A stretch of 56,542 nt of DNA, the filler included, from Platydemus manokwari (Eukaryota): the NCBI GenBank assembly GCA_037951405.1. It is 6 parts of 6 records of this genome, joined end to end, with 100 filler letters (N's around TTAATTAATTAA, not from the genome) between each part and the next. Parts side by side here need not be neighbours in the genome. Positions count along the whole stretch, not along the records: positions 28,611 to 37,402 come from JBBMOY011349205.1; 5 more parts are not named here. One strand, written 5' to 3'. Below the pieces are notes generated by a model. That model was not told the origin of the DNA. It was given only the letters and a program-made list of their open reading frames with translations, and searched no databases. Shown here one piece after another: positions 28,611 through 37,402 of the stretch. The position numbers were made by a program, and so were the translations under genes. Every line of letters starts with the position of its first letter. Positions within the stretch are counted from its first letter, which is position 1.

Positions 28611-29064
28611 ATTTTGTTTTGTTTGTGTTTTGTTTTTTTTGTTTAGCGAAAAAACCGGAAAGGAATTACCGACACACCTGGTATATCGGAATCAGAAACT
28701 AATCATAAATTTATGATCTAATGCTTGCTGATTGGATCTCAATCGTTTGTCGATTGAAACAAAAAGGTACAAACGTTTCAATACACTGATAGAAATTGAA
28801 AATGAAACCGACATATAAAATCTTTTGGTTAAGATCTAAAACATTAGCAACAACTGAAAAATCAATACCGTTATACCAAATGAACATAGATTTTGGGCTT
28901 TAAAATTAGGTTACTCGTGAAGAAATACATCAAATAATGTTGTGGTGATGTGTTTTATCTTTCAAGTGCGGAACCCTTTCTTGTTGTGATTCGATCTTAA
29001 TATTTTAGACTTTCTTTGATCAAATAAACCTTTTCTTTTATAATTTTGCTTACACGTCCTAATG

Positions 29065-29513
29065 TGTCACAATAATTTTGATGAGTTTAAAAATAAGCAA
29101 GAAAGATAAGTCAAATAAGTATAAAAGATAAAGTAAAAAATAAACAAGTAAATGCAATTTGATAACAAGTAATATTAACAATTACCGTCTATCTAGGGTA
29201 ATTAAAATAAATAAATACTAGGTTAATGCTGTAGTAAGTATGAACAACAGGATGTTCACATAAGGGATGTACATAGTGAAAATAAGTATATAAAGAGCGA
29301 GTTAACTCTTTATTTTCGTCTGGAGACTTCAATAGGTTTATTTGATAGTCCTGCAACAAATGTAGTTGTACGGGATTAAAAGTGTATTAGAAGGTATTTT
29401 TGATATTAGCAGTGCGCTAATTCGTACAGTAGAGTATTTTAGTATAATATTAGCTAGGACTAGATTCTCAGCTAAGGTATTCAGAAGAAGTATCGGGACT
29501 TGGTAACGTAACA
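29065..29513 (+). mobile_element. Putative LTR (~450 bp) followed by a degraded primer-binding site
   Basis: Starts TGTCAC and ends GTAACA (near-inverted TG..CA ends), with an internal TATATAAAG at ~29287. Followed by TTTTAGGGATTCGT, loosely like a tRNA-Pro PBS. No second copy in the window. Confidence 0.4.
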
Positions 29514-30617
29514 TTTTAGGGATTCGTGTTCCCTCAACGTTAATCTTTCATATATACATATCTTCGTCAAAAAGACGTATTTATTTTTACTTTGTGCCTA
29601 CCAGAATTTGAATAGGAGTCAAATAAGTAGGATAAGACAGCGCCATCAAGTGACAGTAGTTCTAAACTTAACAATTTTGTCAGTAAAAGTCACTTTCACA
29701 ATGAAAATCTACTGATAATTCATATTTTGTAGTAATGAGCTAAGAATTTATTGAAAATTAAACCTTTTACAGGATCACCTTCACAATCTACCTAAATACA
29801 AATGTGACTTCATTAAATAAATATTGTTGTTTATTATATTTAGTTTTCCGTTTTCACCGCGCACTAGTTTGGATAAATTATTTAATACGTTAAGATATAA
29901 ATTACCAAAATTACACGTTTTTAAAATTGAAGATAGTCAGTACAATAATAAAGGATAGTCACATCAAGAACAAAGAATAATCAATGAAAGTTTGGCAATT
30001 TTTCTCAATAATAAGAATGTGCTTCATACATTTACTTGTTGCTTAAAGTTTTACTTTTCATATGTTAGATTCATTTGAAGATTTGTCCGCATATTTAATT
30101 GATTGGTTTTATTTTCTCTTATGTCATTGAATCATTTTAGTGCAATTTTAATCCAATCGGACAGTGGTAATTTGAAAATAAAAAAAATTGATTAATTAAT
30201 GATGGTTGCGTCTATTGGGATTTATTGTCTATCCTTTTTGAAGATTGTCCAATGGTTTATGAGAATTATCAAGATGAGAATTATCTACATCAACGGCCAC
30301 ATTGAATGAAACTGTATTCAATTGAGAAAATATCTCAAACGACAAAAACATCAAATAATTTTTTACATTTATAATTTTAGGTAATTGCTCAGACTTCTCA
30401 ATATCCAAGAAAAAAAATAGATAGGAACCAAATAAATATGATATTAATTATCAGGGGGGTTTATTTTCCGACAGAGAAATAGTGAAATAACATTCTAAGA
30501 TGAATCAATGAATAAAACTATAGTCACATTATTTAAAATCTTTTATACTTTCAAAAATGTATCCAAGAATACGTTCCAGAACCAGTAACAATGACTCAGA
30601 ATTTAATTTTTAAATCA

Positions 30618-32455
30618 CACTAAAAGCATTTTTTGCTATGGAATATTTATATCCTCAATTGAATGTGTTAAAAATTCCTGTATGAGGATTGTTTATAATG
30701 ACATCTTTCATAAAATGTGATATTGTTGCTCATTACTTATTTATTTATGGTAGAAATTAATAATTTTCTTCAATATTATTCAACAACAATTATGTCAGTG
30801 TGAAGAAAACATATTTCAGTTTGTCGGAACTCAAAAATAGTATTGATATTTTCTCAAATTGAACACATCACCAACAGAAGTTATTATATTTAATAAGTTG
30901 GAAGATGTCAAGATAAGGTTTACAGCCAATAGAATTATACACAATTGTTCATATGTATTTTGATGTTTTTGGAAAATGTAAATAAATGATCTTGTTTCAA
31001 AAGAATATGCAGCAAGCTTTGGAAACAAGCTGATAGATCACATTGGAAATTGAACGCCGTGTAGTGTCTGCAAGTATTTGACCAAAAAGACATGAAATAT
31101 TATAAATTTAATTATAACAATGGAAAGAAAGTAGTCTTATAATTTTGTGCTTTAAATCTGAAGGGTATTAATTTGGTATGATCAACACAGACTTGTGCAT
31201 CATAATGTTTTTTACTATTATATTTATACCAAATATTGTAAAGCTCTATTTTTCAACATTTGAGAGAACTGTGGCCTCAGACAGTTCATCATATGAATAT
31301 GATATTGAAGATCTAAGCTAAATAGATTAGGTCATACATGAAACAATTCTAATAGTTCAGACTAAATTATTTAGTTTACGACTTAAGCCTTCCGAAAAAA
31401 GAATTACGATTGAAATGGAAAAAAGACTTTATAATAGTGTATATAACTTTATATCACAGGCTATTCATTTATTTTGTCACTAAATAGAGTCAATTTATTG
31501 CAGAGATATCAGTGAACCTTCAAATATCTTTAATAACCAGGAATACAAACCTCAAGAATTTTACCTCTTTATCGATAATTGAAAGGGTATTATAAAATGT
31601 ATATTAATGCTTAACATGAATTATTTTATCCGAAATCTGAAAGAATCATGTTAAGATACATACATATACATACATACACATGAAAGATATTACATATCAC
31701 CATAAATGGGGCATCTACATAGACTTGAAAATTATGAATTTTCTCTTGGAACAACAATCTGGGTATGCAAAATACCCCTCTTTTGCATGTAAAATTGTAA
31801 ATATTGAGTGAAGAAAGCCTGGGCACCATCAGAAAGCTTGGTTTCACGCTGTCAATATTTTTGAAGAGACAAAGTAAGATTGAAGATTGCAGCAAAGTTT
31901 GATACAGCAGTTTTTGCTAAAATATTCAATTGACCTAAATAAAAAATATTTACTGGTCATTGCTATTATTAATTTATCGAAGTGTAATTGTCAACTATTT
32001 ATAGATTTCTACAGAAATCTTTAATTCTTATGTCATAAAGGACTGAAGAATTTTTGAAATGCAATTATATCGTAAATAGAATAAGATAGACTCAGTTAAT
32101 ATATTAATAAAAAGAATTAAAACTTTTGATATATTAAATGAAATATGATGATAATCGAAATAAACGAAAATTTTTGATTACGTAACCACCAGTTAAAGAT
32201 GTAATCAATCAGTAAGGTCTAGTCATAACAATTGTTATAATTTATAACAATGTATTTTTAAAGTATTGATTATGAGAAACACTATTTCAATAATTTTGTG
32301 ACACATTTGATAAGATCAATTTGATTTACCCAAAATTGTTAATGGTAAAAATTCAATTTTTTTTACTGATAACATATTGTCTAATTTTTAAGTTAAGAAT
32401 TTTGTTTAAATCTTAACTTCAGTTATCGTGGTGTAATCAAAATATTATTACAGTG
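30618..32455 (+). mobile_element. Highly decayed Chapaev3-type (CMC superfamily) DNA transposon
   Basis: Collinear transposase motifs: KEYAASFGNKLIDHIGN*TPCSVC (~31000-31070), LVYDLSLPKK (~31371), IYCRDIS..EYKPQEFYLFID (~31492-31576), ITYHHKWGIYIDLKIMNFLLEQQSGYAKYP (~31689-31778), *VKKAW (~31805). Candidate termini CACT (30618) and CAGTG (ending 32455) are less certain. Confidence 0.7.
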
Positions 32456-33625
32456 TTTTAAAGGTTGATTTGTAACCTTTATTTAGATTTTACTAAGCTG
32501 ACTATTGTGTTGAATCTCAATTCAAAATACTTGTTTATTTAGTACTGACCTTCAACGATTATGCTTTGTATTATTTAATATGATAGAATAATTTAGCCAT
32601 CTTCATACAGTTGAAAGGTCATTTCGTTCTTGTAAATCGATATTGCATAATTAAACAATCGGCATGAATATTTTAGAAAATCTTTTCCTACACTTTTGAT
32701 TTTATTAATTAATACTGTATAGATCCAGTTGAATTTCAATCTAAGGCACTATATATATGTATATATCGAAAAAATAGTAACAATAAATAATCATGAAAAA
32801 ATCCGACGTAAAATAATTGAAAATGCCTCATTTAGTAAATGAAATGTTTTCTATATCTGAAGATAAATTATTTAAATTTCTATTTATAGTTTATGTTTTT
32901 CTTAAAGATTAAAATTTAAATAAAATCTTTCATTAAATAATGGCTGTTTGACCGAAAATAGCAAACAAATACTTTGATGTTTACTTTAAAGTTGGCCATG
33001 TTTAATTTATTATTCGAAATATATGCACTCTAATTTTGATTGATTTTATCAAATGTGTCACAGAATAATTGAAATAAAATTTCTAATAAACAATAGTTAA
33101 CGAATGCATTGTTATAATTACAACAAATCGATTATATAAAATTTAAAATTGAACGAAAGATATAATTTTAACTGACAGATAAAGTGTGGAAGTCGGAACC
33201 GATTATAGGAATGTAATCAGAAATAAATCGAAAATGATTTCATTTGTATTGGTCAGATTAAGCATCCTAAATCAATTGATATATCTAATCGCTGATTAAA
33301 CAGTCATACGACTTGCGAATTATTTCAAATAATGCGATATTATTTCATCAATCTCTCGTCAAAATGATCATTGTAAATACATTTCATTTTCGCATACATG
33401 TCGACAGTTTACACGGCAATCAACACACATCATTCCTTATGACAAAACTTTATTCAGTAAGAAACACAAGCATTTATTCCACGAATTACAACAATTAATT
33501 TAATTGCCGGATCAATGAAGCCAACCAAATTCCAGTGTTTACTTTTCAGATTTATCACATTTAATTGCTAGAAACAAGTCAGAAAATCTAAACATTCTTC
33601 TATTTATGGCCGAAAATATATTGAA

Positions 33626-36600
33626 ATGCCTCTAAAAAAAGATATTTTAAGCTTTATCAAAACCAAAGACTATGACGGATTGGAATATGAATTAAAGAAT
33701 TTAAAAACCAACCAAAAATTTCTTAATGAATCTCTGAAATGGGCATGTTTTCAGGGTGATGCAAAATCGGTGGAAATTCTCATCAAGTTCGGAGCTAATG
33801 CAAATTATTCTGATGAATTCGGTACGACAGTTCTTCATTTTGCTGTCAAGGGTGAAAAAGAAGATGTCATCATTTCTTTGTTGAACTGTGGAGCTGATTT
33901 CCAAGATTGGGAAAATGAAGGAATCAATTTAATGCAATGGTCGATTCGACATGGTTTGGCAGACGTTTTGGATGTCCTTGTGACGAAATTTAACATTGAT
34001 TTGACACAATCCGATGATTTGGGTCGCAGTAATCTTCATTTAGCTTGCATGTTTGGACAAGTGAAAATTGTTCAATATATTCTTGCGACTGGATTGCTCA
34101 GTGTTGATGAAAGAGATGAGAACGGATGGACCCCTCTTCATTATGCCTGTTCGGAAGCTACAACAAGTTTCCGGGAAATGATTCAAGTTCTTTTCAAACA
34201 CAATGCAGATCCAATTTTAATGACAACAAATAATAAAACATCTTTGGATCTGGCCTATGAAGCTGGTCGAGCTCAAGATTTGATCGACGTTTTAACCATT
34301 CATAAAATGCTTCAGCTTTTAATTTCCGTTGACAGTGTTGTAGTGGGCAATTTTCCTGGACGAGAGCCAAATTTGGTGAATCAGAGCAGAACTAGTGAAG
34401 TTGATCATGTTGAGAGACAAATAACCACCAAACATAGAGAATTTCACTCAGCTACGAAATTACAAGAACGCCATGTTACATTGAAATTATCGATATGGAG
34501 AAAGGTTATTTTGAATGATGACATTGAATTGTTGCAAGAATATCGAGATTCCGGAATCTGGTATGATGCTGAGAATCCCTGCAGTTTCGAGGAATGTCAA
34601 GAATTAACTCAACAAAATTTCAGTGAAATCTTTAGAGATTGCTATGAAAATGGAGTTGGACTATTTTCTTATTTCAATGACAATTTTGGAAAACAAATAA
34701 AACGCTCTGATTTTTCCGGAATTCTCATCAATATTAGCCGCATCGGAAAATTCTGCAGTTTAACAACAGAAAATTGTATCTTGTTCAGCAGTTTTCAAGA
34801 ATCGATTCTGTTTTTAGCATATATTACTGGACGATTCAAAGTGGTTGAAATGCTTCTCAAAATGAGACAATTTGATATAATCTCAACATGTCTCATAATT
34901 TGTTTGATAACACATCATTTGGAAAGGAGAAAGAAGTTCCCACTGCAAATTGTCGATAGTCTGCACGCTTTAGCTCATAAATCGGAACTCATTGCTGTTG
35001 ATGTCTTGAACAGGGTTTATTTCAAAGACAATTCTCCAGAAAAACAAGTTACACTCCATTTTTTAAATACACAACTTAGTTCGTATGGAAACAAGAGTCT
35101 TATCGATTTGGCCGATGCTGCAAATTGTTCTAATTTCCTCAGTCTTCCTTGTTGTCAGCTTATTTTAGATAAAAGATGGTATGGGAATTTACGACCGTTG
35201 CGATCTCATTTAAAATGGGTTATACGGTTTTTACCAGTCACGATATTGTTGTACAATCCCTACAACAATAAACCTGTACCTATGTTGAATGGACTGATTA
35301 AAACAAAGTTTGACCAGATAGATGAAGTCAAAATTGTACTCACAGACAAATCAAAGAAAGTAGCACAATTAAATAAAAATGGTTTGCAAGATAACCATGT
35401 TGACTCGTTAAATAGATTCCAAGTACTTTATGCAGTTGTCAATGCACCTGGAACGAAATTCTTTTATCATTCGGTAGCGCATTTTATTTTTCTATTAATA
35501 ATGTCTTACATAATGCTTTTTGATTTTCATATAATTGTTGAATGGGAAGAAATTCTTTGTTATTCATTTGTTTTAGGATATGCTATTGAAGAATCTCGTC
35601 AATGTTTTCTTGTATCCATACAAACATCGATTAAGGATTATATAAACGATAAATGGAATTGGTTAGATATTTCTGCAATTTTGGCAACAGTAATTGGATT
35701 AGTTTTGCGATTGATTACGCAGCACTATGTTGAAGTTAAAAACATTTCTCGATATGAGGAATCCATGAATGATTTGTTCTACATTTCAAGGGTGGCTCTT
35801 CTAACAAGCCTATTATTATTCTATCTTCGGATTCTTTTCATTGCATCTATCTCAGCAATTTTAGGTCCCAAACTAAGAATGATTGGTGATATGCTGCGGA
35901 AAGATTTCCTTCCACTTTTATTATTATTTGTCATTTTTATTCTAGCTTTTGGTGTTTTATTTCAAGGTCTGTTATATCCAAATGGTTGGTATCACAAAAA
36001 CAATAATACTAAATTACTGCCTCCAAAAATGGTATCGAAATATGAAATTGAGATTGTAGGACTTCTTCTTAAACGAGCTATTTATGGAATATTTGAAGCT
36101 GACTTTCCAATAGAAGAAACAAAGTGTGAATCTCAAGATTATTGTGTCCATCCTCTTGGGCGCAATTTAGTTTTAAGTCTTAGCTTAATTATATACATTG
36201 TCATAGTGTATATTATGCTTATGAATCTTCTGATAGCTTTGTTTAGCAACACTGTAGCGCGTATTAATCAGCGGTCCATTGAACATTGGTTGGCCGATAG
36301 ATATAAATTAGTCGAAGAATATAAAGAACGTAGTATATTTCCGCCACCGTTTAATATTTTTGAACGATTTTTCAACATTCTTTTCCATATATTTCGACTT
36401 GTGAAATCACCTTGTTGCAAATACCACTTCTCTTGTTCGTATAAAATAATCAATCAACCAGAGTCAGAAGTGAATACCGTTGTCAAATTTATAATAATAC
36501 AATCCTTTGCATTGAAAACGTGCCGTTACTTGTTGGGTTCAAAAAGTAGCCGAAATATTCTATCATCTGCCAGTTCTTCAGATAAAATGTCTGAACTTGA

Positions 36601-36913
36601 AATGAAAGTATTGAAAGATAAAATCCATAAAGTTGACATGAAACTGGACAAAATTCTTTCCATAATTGGGATGAGTCGACCATTGGATAATTGTAAAGAA
36701 ACCGAAGAGCAACTGTTCCCTCGAGTTAATAATCTCAAATACCAGGAATTCCCAATCAAGCATGAATCAAAACGAAATAGCAGAATGTCTACAGCAAGTA
36801 GTTACAAACATAAAGATATTGATAATTATTCACCTCGAGAAGGCAAGAATCAAGAATGGAATAACGCAATGGATATATTTAAAAGTATTTTAGATGAAGA
36901 TGACCTGAAATAA
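33626..36913 (+). CDS. TRP cation channel with N-terminal ankyrin repeats and a TRPM-type core; single-exon CDS of 1095 aa
   Basis: About 5-6 ankyrin repeats in aa ~30-220 (GTTVLHFAV, GRSNLHLAC, GWTPLHYAC). MHR4/pre-S1-like YGNKSLIDLADAANCSNFLSLPCCQLILDKRWYGNL and NAPGTKFF; six TM helices with DKWNWLD, LGPKLRMIGDM, MNLLIALFSNT; TRPM-style TRP helix W..RY.LV.EY.ER..FPPPF; short C-terminal coiled coil. Confidence 0.95.
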   Translation: MPLKKDILSFIKTKDYDGLEYELKNLKTNQKFLNESLKWACFQGDAKSVEILIKFGANANYSDEFGTTVLHFAVKGEKEDVIISLLNCGADFQDWENEGINLMQWSIRHGLADVLDVLVTKFNIDLTQSDDLGRSNLHLACMFGQVKIVQYILATGLLSVDERDENGWTPLHYACSEATTSFREMIQVLFKHNADPILMTTNNKTSLDLAYEAGRAQDLIDVLTIHKMLQLLISVDSVVVGNFPGREPNLVNQSRTSEVDHVERQITTKHREFHSATKLQERHVTLKLSIWRKVILNDDIELLQEYRDSGIWYDAENPCSFEECQELTQQNFSEIFRDCYENGVGLFSYFNDNFGKQIKRSDFSGILINISRIGKFCSLTTENCILFSSFQESILFLAYITGRFKVVEMLLKMRQFDIISTCLIICLITHHLERRKKFPLQIVDSLHALAHKSELIAVDVLNRVYFKDNSPEKQVTLHFLNTQLSSYGNKSLIDLADAANCSNFLSLPCCQLILDKRWYGNLRPLRSHLKWVIRFLPVTILLYNPYNNKPVPMLNGLIKTKFDQIDEVKIVLTDKSKKVAQLNKNGLQDNHVDSLNRFQVLYAVVNAPGTKFFYHSVAHFIFLLIMSYIMLFDFHIIVEWEEILCYSFVLGYAIEESRQCFLVSIQTSIKDYINDKWNWLDISAILATVIGLVLRLITQHYVEVKNISRYEESMNDLFYISRVALLTSLLLFYLRILFIASISAILGPKLRMIGDMLRKDFLPLLLLFVIFILAFGVLFQGLLYPNGWYHKNNNTKLLPPKMVSKYEIEIVGLLLKRAIYGIFEADFPIEETKCESQDYCVHPLGRNLVLSLSLIIYIVIVYIMLMNLLIALFSNTVARINQRSIEHWLADRYKLVEEYKERSIFPPPFNIFERFFNILFHIFRLVKSPCCKYHFSCSYKIINQPESEVNTVVKFIIIQSFALKTCRYLLGSKSSRNILSSASSSDKMSELEMKVLKDKIHKVDMKLDKILSIIGMSRPLDNCKETEEQLFPRVNNLKYQEFPIKHESKRNSRMSTASSYKHKDIDNYSPREGKNQEWNNAMDIFKSILDEDDLK

Positions 36914-37402
36914 AGTTTTGTATTTTTTTAAATATTAACTTGTTTATTCTTATAATAGTCATTTTAGAGATGTTCATTATGATTTTATATCGTTTATTTC
37001 GAACTGGTCTAGTGTTTTAAATCGTTTATTTTCAAATATATTTTCAGCTGTTATTATTAACATTTTCCTCTAATTTTGATGAACTTTTCCTGTTGATGCT
37101 GTCCTCTGAATGATTATTTGTAAATAAATTTCGTTGATTTAATAACCGATATGAATTAGTTCTAACGGAACATATATACGAATTAATGTCAAATAGAATT
37201 AATAAAACAAATCAAATATAACTTACTAATGGTTTTTATATTCTATAATTACACACTCGGATTTTATTATTTCGACTCATTCCTACTTAATCATTATGAA
37301 ATTCTTTAAATAATTACTTTAATTTTGTTTTCAATTGAAAAATAAACACTTGATTATTTGAAACAATCAAATTAAAATTTAATTCCAGACATCATAACAA
37401 TA

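Follow-up and report, generated by a model that had tools for sequence, protein, structure and literature searches.

A single-exon ankyrin-bearing TRPM-like channel gene in the flatworm Platydemus manokwari, very probably of the TRPM_MCLZ family

Can a channel with a TRPM-type core carry ankyrin repeats at its N terminus, and if so, is it a new kind of channel or a member of a family that has already been described? This question is raised by a long open reading frame (ORF) in a 56,542-nucleotide (nt) stretch of Platydemus manokwari DNA, here called the window, along the whole of which all positions are counted. We examined the piece from 28611 to 37402, which comes from JBBMOY011349205.1. The textbook statement is that TRPM and TRPS channels lack ankyrin repeats (PMC7306681), and the first-pass annotation of this ORF had described it as a chimeric channel, a TRPA-like sensor module on a melastatin-type pore. 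We find that the channel core is of TRPM type and that its fusion to ankyrin repeats is genuine. From sequence comparisons, the ORF very probably specifies a functional channel of the flatworm "TRPM-like" family, whose type member is the schistosome channel TRPM_MCLZ (Smp_333650).

The gene was delimited from the ORF listing, and its start and stop are those of P0001, the nearest public protein.

33626-36913, plus strand: complete single-exon coding sequence, very probably of a TRPM_MCLZ-family (ankyrin-TRPM-like) channel, 1,095 amino acids (aa)

This frame runs uninterrupted for 1,095 codons, has no introns, and is preceded by an in-frame TAG stop at 33569-33571, 18 codons 5' of the ATG. The second-longest ORF on either strand of the piece encodes 89 aa. 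By our own estimate from base composition (about 0.07 stops per codon), the chance of an open run of 1,095 codons is about 1e-36. The piece is AT-rich, and its GC content is 22 to 30% in the flanks versus 32 to 38% across the gene.

The ankyrin-TRPM fusion is genuine and not a misassembly, based on an independent contig that spans the ORF and on flatworm homologues that carry the same fusion. A Logan contig of 4,899 nt from a public run covers 32494-37392 with 0 differences and no joint within the gene; the run behind it may be the source sample, so this contig lends modest support. A second contig, L001 (SRR33002330), has a colinear, uninterrupted, intronless ORF that shares its start and stop with the window gene and is 81% identical to it in protein and 73% in DNA. 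P0001 is the 81%-identical homologue encoded by this unannotated Logan contig. A third, L002 (DRR639838), encodes an uninterrupted homologue of 1,072 aa. Ankyrin repeats and an Ion_trans domain occur in one chain in 24 of the 24 aligned family members, including trematode, cestode, and Macrostomum proteins. Read mapping also gave a "joint" from 32070 to 36916 that could be read as a deletion. It depends on 22-letter matches from a 523-nt contig, and we rejected it as a short repeat or chance match.

We assigned the functional parts of the protein using Pfam, the family alignment, and an AlphaFold2 (AF2) model of the full protein built from the 24-sequence family alignment, with a mean predicted local distance difference test score (pLDDT) of 69. 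The parts and the evidence for each are as follows.

33635-34330, plus strand: ankyrin-repeat domain, residues 4 to 235, six helix-pair repeats (Pfam Ank families; AF2 pLDDT of about 80 to 89)
34337-34468, plus strand: disordered linker, residues 238 to 281 (AF2 pLDDT below 50; length variable in the family alignment)
34478-35275, plus strand: helical domain of TRPM MHR3(part)/MHR4 type, residues 285 to 550 (profile, Foldseek, VIA-align, weak Pfam match)
35276-35440, plus strand: variable pre-S1 loop and pre-S1 helix, residues 551 to 605 (AF2, low pLDDT at 552 to 592 and helix at 593 to 605)
35447-35851, plus strand: voltage-sensor-like domain S1-S4, residues 608 to 742 (AF2 helices; residue mapping)
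35864-36241, plus strand: S4-S5 linker, S5, pore helix, filter, and S6, residues 747 to 872 (AF2 helices; Pfam Ion_trans; TRPM matches)
36032-36145, plus strand: pore helix with Y820, filter F823-E824-A825, and outer-pore C834/C840 (family alignment; site table)
36245-36352, plus strand: TRP helix, residues 874 to 901 (W888, R892, Y899, R902), and PPPF, residues 906 to 909 (AF2 helix; alignment to human TRPM2 [hTRPM2])
36587-36664, plus strand: long C-terminal helix, residues 988 to 1013, candidate tetramerizing coiled coil (AF2, moderate confidence; putative role)

The ankyrin region matched Pfam Ank_2, Ank_4, Ank, and Ank_3 over residues ~23 to 225 (E value, 5e-26), Ion_trans matched residues 620 to 794, and a TRPM2-like domain matched weakly at residues 412 to 506. 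No Pfam match to SLOG, NUDIX, kinase, or TRPM_tetra was found in the 1,095-aa protein. These results bear out the domain order read in the first-pass annotation, which had listed about five to six ankyrin repeats, a linker, and then MHR3/4-like, S1-S6, and TRP helix segments with PPPF of TRPM type, with no SLOG region and no NUDT9-H or kinase tail; the Pfam scan returned the combination it anticipated, Ank plus TRPM-like plus Ion_trans without SLOG. The modeled helices place S1 at residues 608 to 632, S2 at 640 to 666, S3 at 676 to 701, S4 at 716 to 742, the S4-S5 linker at 747 to 756, S5 at 762 to 783, the pore helix at 803 to 823, and S6 at 843 to 872. In the family alignment, the pre-S1 loop region has large insertions in trematodes and cestodes, and W888, E898, P906, and P908 are invariant. 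The C terminus extends about 190 residues past the TRP helix, lacks any Pfam domain, and is predicted by AF2 to be disordered except for one or two helices. Because Pfam TRPM_tetra is unmatched, helix 988-1013 is kept as a candidate coiled coil. The cytosolic part had also been called Cys-rich, a description that fits poorly with a Cys content of 2.1% overall and at most 3.0%, in the linker.

The channel core is TRPM type by both sequence and fold. A profile of residues 285 to 605 matched only TRPM chains in the PDB, led by nvTRPM2 (E value, 5e-15) and followed by TRPM2, TRPM1, TRPM3, TRPM7, TRPM8, TRPM4, and TRPM5. Residues 600 to 925 matched TRPM2 by phmmer (E value, 1.6e-25), with TRPM proteins making up all of the best 60 PDB hits, and residues 423 to 923 matched TRPM3 (E value, 3e-33). 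In the whole-protein PDB search, the channel stretch of NOMPC scored only 22.8 bits. The MHR3/4 part, from residue 285 onward, was modeled separately (pLDDT, 73), and this model aligned by Foldseek and VIA-align to TRPM3, TRPM2, TRPM4, and TRPM7 with Z scores of 15 to 18 and a root mean square deviation of ~3 Å over 200 to 230 residues. Residues 1 to 237 of the model (protein residues 285 to 521) align to residues 423 to 683 of human TRPM4, which are part of MHR3 plus MHR4, and VIA-align matched the model to TRPM3 residues 451 to 743. The best 50 Foldseek hits of the full model were all TRPM. The TRP helix (W..RY...EY) is present, aligns with that of hTRPM2, and is followed by PPPF. Against a pair of canonical TRPMs, core residues 285 to 935 scored 121 and 81 bits, and they gave no match to two TRPA1 proteins, even with filters off. 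In these comparisons, made with PDB structures, the two TRPMs, and the two TRPA1 proteins, the transmembrane core groups with TRPM; the first-pass annotation had named a grouping with TRPC, TRPN, or TRPA as what would refute its reading.

Set against canonical TRPMs (TRPM2, TRPM3, TRPM4, TRPM8, and the flatworm channel TRPM_PZQ), the protein has the same MHR3/4 fold, S1-S6, TRP helix with PPPF, and E/Q/N/D Ca2+-site residues of the S2-S3 region. It differs from them in lacking SLOG/MHR1-2, with ankyrin repeats in its place, in a filter without the conserved Gly, and in having no TRPM_tetra match, NUDT9-H, or kinase. TRPM_PZQ has 36 exons, against the single exon of the window gene.

The N-terminal ankyrin array followed by a six-transmembrane TRP channel is a likeness to TRPA channels (TRPA1, painless, and pyrexia), and Atlas language-model features place the whole protein nearest to TRPA-like clusters (painless, pyrexia, and TRPA1). 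These neighbors, and an architecture that contradicts the textbook statement cited above, speak for the proposal that the gene represents an undescribed domain-swapped TRP subfamily, in which a TRPA-type ankyrin sensor sits on a TRPM pore and gating is thermal, electrophile, or mechanical. We regard this proposal as highly improbable. The TRPA1 ankyrin array has ~14 to 18 repeats, and the window protein has six, which match Ankyrin-1/2, DARPins, and NOMPC better than TRPA1. TRPA1 has its coupling domain in the pre-S1 region, where its electrophile-sensing cysteines also lie; the window protein has a TRPM MHR4 there, and its core has no detectable TRPA1 similarity. We rejected TRPA kinship from the Atlas features on account of this lack of similarity and because no alignment stands behind it; the Atlas neighbors probably reflect a shared "Ank plus Ion_trans" make-up. 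Moreover, the same architecture has been published for TRPM_MCLZ (PMC11731825, PMC10788528, PMC12861061), and the window protein nests in that family. The ankyrin array on a melastatin-type core therefore stands, the "TRPA-like" sensor does not, and the claim of a novel architecture is largely refuted. Thermal, electrophile, or mechanical gating is pure speculation.

TRPM_MCLZ, described in papers from 2023 to 2026, is a schistosome channel activated by the anti-schistosome drug meclonazepam, which targets it and evokes Ca2+ signals through it. It has N-terminal ankyrin repeats, no MHR1/2-SLOG region, a short C terminus without an enzyme domain, and three exons, and it clusters beside other TRPMs, hence "TRPM-like" (PMC10788528, PMC11731825, PMC12861061). 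A 2026 paper cataloged 63 TRPM_MCLZ homologues in trematodes, monogeneans, and cestodes (PMC12861061). We found homologues of the window protein in Schistosoma, Fasciola, Dicrocoelium, Echinococcus, Taenia, and other flatworms at 35 to 43% identity and with the same Pfam make-up. Ankyrin repeats were detected in 24/24 family members and SLOG in 0/24; as a control, SLOG was detected in canonical TRPM1a (1.6e-113) and TRPM3 (1.2e-25). The alignment is anchored to the published channel by P0184 (S. guineensis, 1,380 aa), which reproduces all published Schistosoma mansoni (Sm) TRPM_MCLZ residue numbers, as checked at L826, H827, H831, Y864, E868, I892, D893, R943, H946, Y1038, Y1117, R1120, and T1121.

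The window protein resembles TRPM_MCLZ in its ankyrin repeats replacing MHR1/2-SLOG, its MHR4/S1-S6/TRP core, its short enzyme-less C terminus, the six predicted meclonazepam-contact residues, the pore Tyr at Sm Y1038 (Y820), an IFE-type filter, and the outer-pore Cys pair. It is shorter than TRPM_MCLZ, at 1,095 versus 1,380 aa, and lacks all three of the long inserts that trematode and cestode TRPM_MCLZ proteins have inside the ankyrin domain, in the pre-S1 region, and after the TRP helix. It also differs in having one exon rather than three and Phe rather than His at the S4 tuning position.

We placed the protein within the family by a maximum-likelihood tree that covered the region from MHR4 to the TRP helix and took three canonical TRPMs as its only outgroups. 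The family separated from canonical TRPMs with support of 100/100. From the root, seven Macrostomum paralogues branch first, followed by P0064 plus P0088, by the window clade (the window protein, P0001, and P0035, a fragment 82% identical to the window protein), by P0037 plus P0044, and finally by cestodes plus a group of Protopolystoma and trematodes. The node uniting all sequences above Macrostomum had support of 100/96, and the node uniting the window clade with the later branches had 90/90. As the outgroups are few and long-branched, the exact placement of the family among TRPM and TRPS is taken from the published tree and not from this one. Together with a GC content of 27 to 30% in the flanks, the tree position of the window protein is compatible with a monogenean or with a free-living flatworm such as a triclad. 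Simple membership of TRPS, which is ced-11-like, with SLOG present and a divergent TRP box 2, is argued against by the absence of SLOG.

The same tree bears on whether the gene is its lineage's TRPM_MCLZ orthologue or a paralogue from inside the ankyrin-TRPM-like family that binds another ligand and serves another role. Paralogy is suggested by the expansion of at least seven clusters in Macrostomum, by the existence of the divergent ankyrin-bearing clade of P0064 and P0088, and by the branching of the window clade outside cestodes, trematodes, and Protopolystoma. We consider it the less favored outcome, with perhaps a modest chance of being correct, since the six predicted contact residues and a derived three-residue filter deletion are common to the window protein and neodermatan TRPM_MCLZ and are not found in the Macrostomum paralogues, and the window clade joins Neodermata with the 90/90 support given above. 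P0064 (826 aa) and P0088 (818 aa) come from UniParc/MetaClust only and are very divergent; this ankyrin-bearing clade between Macrostomum and the window clade may be a paralogous lineage.

Comparison with the L001 homologue shows that the gene is real, intact, and under purifying selection along its whole length. Nonsynonymous divergence (dN) is 0.12, and synonymous divergence (dS) is saturated by the NG86 method, for which reason we state no dN/dS ratio. The ankyrin segment is the best conserved part relative to P0001 (90% aa identity and dN of 0.055, with S1-S6 at 77.5%), which suggests a constrained role for the ankyrin domain, in binding or assembly. The L001 contig has 44% GC versus ~30% GC for the window piece, a large compositional shift despite the conserved protein.

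An intronless gene could also be a dead or dying retrocopy, that is, a processed pseudogene derived from a multi-exon TRPM_MCLZ gene at another place in the genome. The single exon would fit, set beside three exons in the schistosome and Echinococcus homologues, as would the failure of sequencing-run searches to find expression data. Even so, we give this explanation very little credence. The 1,095-codon frame is intact in DNA of ~33% GC, the homologue of another species is likewise intronless and agrees with it in start and stop, and dN is low against saturated dS, with each segment conserved. The key pocket, Ca2+-site, pore, and TRP residues are all kept. In addition, Macrostomum paralogues are intronless or have one intron, so that intronlessness looks ancestral rather than a sign of decay.

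With a functional TRPM_MCLZ-family member as the favored reading, we examined the residues through which such a channel would work. In the schistosome channel, the residues predicted to contact (S)-meclonazepam are Sm H827, H831, Y864, E868, R943, and Y1117 (PMC12861061). All six are kept in the window protein, as H615, H619, Y652, E656, R735, and Y899 (mapped via P0184). The S4 tuning position, Sm His946, is Phe738 in the window protein, which is the cestode state. In the Sm channel, the H946F substitution lowers potency more than 40-fold and halves efficacy, and the Echinococcus and Fasciola channels are insensitive to meclonazepam (PMC12861061). Based on Phe738, we predict that the window channel is poorly sensitive to meclonazepam. 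Elsewhere, the pocket is a mosaic: Tyr precedes the first His of S1, S3 carries the pair Leu-Asp, and the TRP helix carries Arg-Ser.

Residues E656, Q659, N678, and D681 line up with E843, Q846, N869, and D872 of hTRPM2, which belong to the Ca2+-coordinating site of TRPM2/4/5/8. This makes Ca2+-assisted gating plausible for the window channel. In the pore, Y820 occupies the position of the Sm pore mutant Y1038. The filter had been singled out as atypical, and this held: F823-E824-A825 lacks the Gly of the TRPM F/Y-G-Q/E motif and has a three-residue deletion relative to the Macrostomum paralogues. The Gly-less filter is common to the window clade, trematodes, and cestodes, whereas Macrostomum keeps V-G-D/E-Y. 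The outer-pore Cys pair noted at first pass was likewise confirmed, as C834 and C840 are invariant in 24/24 members, and the pair is comparable to the disulfide in the pore loop of TRPMs. The schistosome channel, whose filter is the same, conducts Ca2+, and from this we infer a Ca2+-permeable non-selective cation channel.

Taken together by homology, these features outline how the channel may work. It would assemble as a tetramer via the C-terminal helix, as judged from TRPM_MCLZ and TRPM2/4/5/8, and would conduct cations including Ca2+, as the schistosome channel does. Opening would follow the binding of a ligand in the S1-S4/TRP pocket, probably with Ca2+ at E656/Q659/N678/D681. The natural agonist of the window channel is predicted to differ from meclonazepam.

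Several points weigh against reading the gene as a functional member of the TRPM_MCLZ family. The tree has only three outgroups, all of them long-branched, and it includes the second ankyrin-bearing clade, P0064/P0088, which bears on orthology versus close paralogy. Statements on conduction, gating, and drug sensitivity are extrapolated from S. mansoni. For the S4 position in particular, reciprocal mutations did not restore sensitivity in the Fasciola or Echinococcus channels, and the S4 residue alone is insufficient to explain meclonazepam sensitivity (PMC12861061). Finally, expression is unproven, as sequencing-run searches returned a single DNA-type run containing the gene and no RNA run.

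The papers cited above treat the TRPM_MCLZ family in parasitic flatworms only (PMC10788528, PMC11731825, PMC12861061). We found the family present and expanded in the free-living flatworm Macrostomum lignano, with at least seven clusters at 50% identity; the members observed there are P0072, P0075, P0092, P0102, P0117, P0139, P0156, and P0227 to P0230. These paralogues (e.g., PAA64338.1 and PAA66045.1) resemble the window gene in being compact, SLOG-less, and intronless or one-intron, with P0075, P0117, and P0210 at 1,112 to 1,125 aa. They differ from it in their 23 to 26% identity, the retained V-G-D/E-Y filter, Glu where the S2 Ca2+ site has Gln, and Phe in place of the TRP Tyr. We found no members outside flatworms; a search with the core of a Macrostomum paralogue, which is limited by word sharing and cannot prove absence, gave only Macrostomum proteins and one canonical flatworm TRPM.

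Intron positions vary across the family. In Macrostomum, P0117 lacks introns (L005), and P0075 is interrupted once, at aa 621, by an intron of ~100 nt (L003). The three exons of the Echinococcus homologue meet at aa 189/190 and 603/604, positions that differ from that of the single Macrostomum intron. The Macrostomum expansion, the intronless genes in the window and in the contig of at least one other lineage, and these differing intron positions raise the possibility, which we put forward tentatively and hold to be somewhat doubtful, that the family is older than parasitism and ancestrally intronless and that the window gene keeps the compact ancestral form. Under such a history, a retroposed, 5'-truncated TRPM transcript that had lost MHR1/2 would have gained an ankyrin N terminus, and parasites would have gained inserts and introns later. 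A retroposition origin is possible but unproven.

What is new here is modest, namely, the sequence itself (nearest public match, 81%), its intronlessness, and the presence of the family in free-living Macrostomum. The exact 1,095-aa protein has no record in a collection of 15 billion proteins, and our literature search found no paper joining meclonazepam, planarians, and TRPM. The gene opens no new class of system. Its interest lies in the family, as flatworms have two validated TRP drug targets, TRPM_MCLZ and TRPM_PZQ, and the window gene is a natural pocket variant outside the trematode and cestode clades that can help map ligand-specificity residues. At 1,095 aa and with few disordered inserts, the protein may suit cryo-electron microscopy better than the 1,380-aa schistosome protein. 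The occurrence of the family in free-living flatworms points to an endogenous function, sensory or homeostatic, that is independent of parasitism. The gene also corrects the general claim that TRPM-type channels never bear ankyrin repeats.

Two sets of homologues showed further variation. The Logan proteins P0037, P0192, and P0044 represent a compact, intronless homologue of 1,072 aa (L002, 1298-4516) with a strongly remodeled pocket: both S1 His residues are Tyr, the S2 Gln is lost, and Phe stands at the TRP Tyr position. P0034 (Opisthorchis viverrini, 1,906 aa) has two consecutive channel domains, and P0183 (Paragonimus kellicotti, 1,505 aa) appears to have two as well, judging by its very high score and its length. 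The double domains look like read-through of exons 3a and 3b, a duplicated alternative pair that has been reported for these trematodes (PMC12861061).

The sequence around the gene is sparse. The ~5 kb on its 5' side (28611-33600) have 22 to 30% GC and no ORF above 89 aa on either strand. The piece from 28611 to 37402 contains no tRNAs and no notable tandem repeats, only two short arrays 5' of the gene, (TTTTG)n at 28612-28644 and, at 29932-29983, 2.4 copies of a 22-mer. An upstream ORF of 162 aa in L001 was rejected as a gene, as it is low complexity and is not conserved as an ORF in the window. Two short elements next to the coding sequence were read from the sequence.

33540-33549, plus strand: pyrimidine-rich TTTTCAG, candidate cis- or trans-splice acceptor in the 5' leader, 76 nt 5' of the ATG
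36909-36914, plus strand: AATAAA hexamer overlapping the TAA stop, possible polyadenylation signal

The first could be the acceptor for a spliced leader or for an intron in the 5' untranslated region. If the second is used as a poly(A) signal, the 3' untranslated region would be extremely short.

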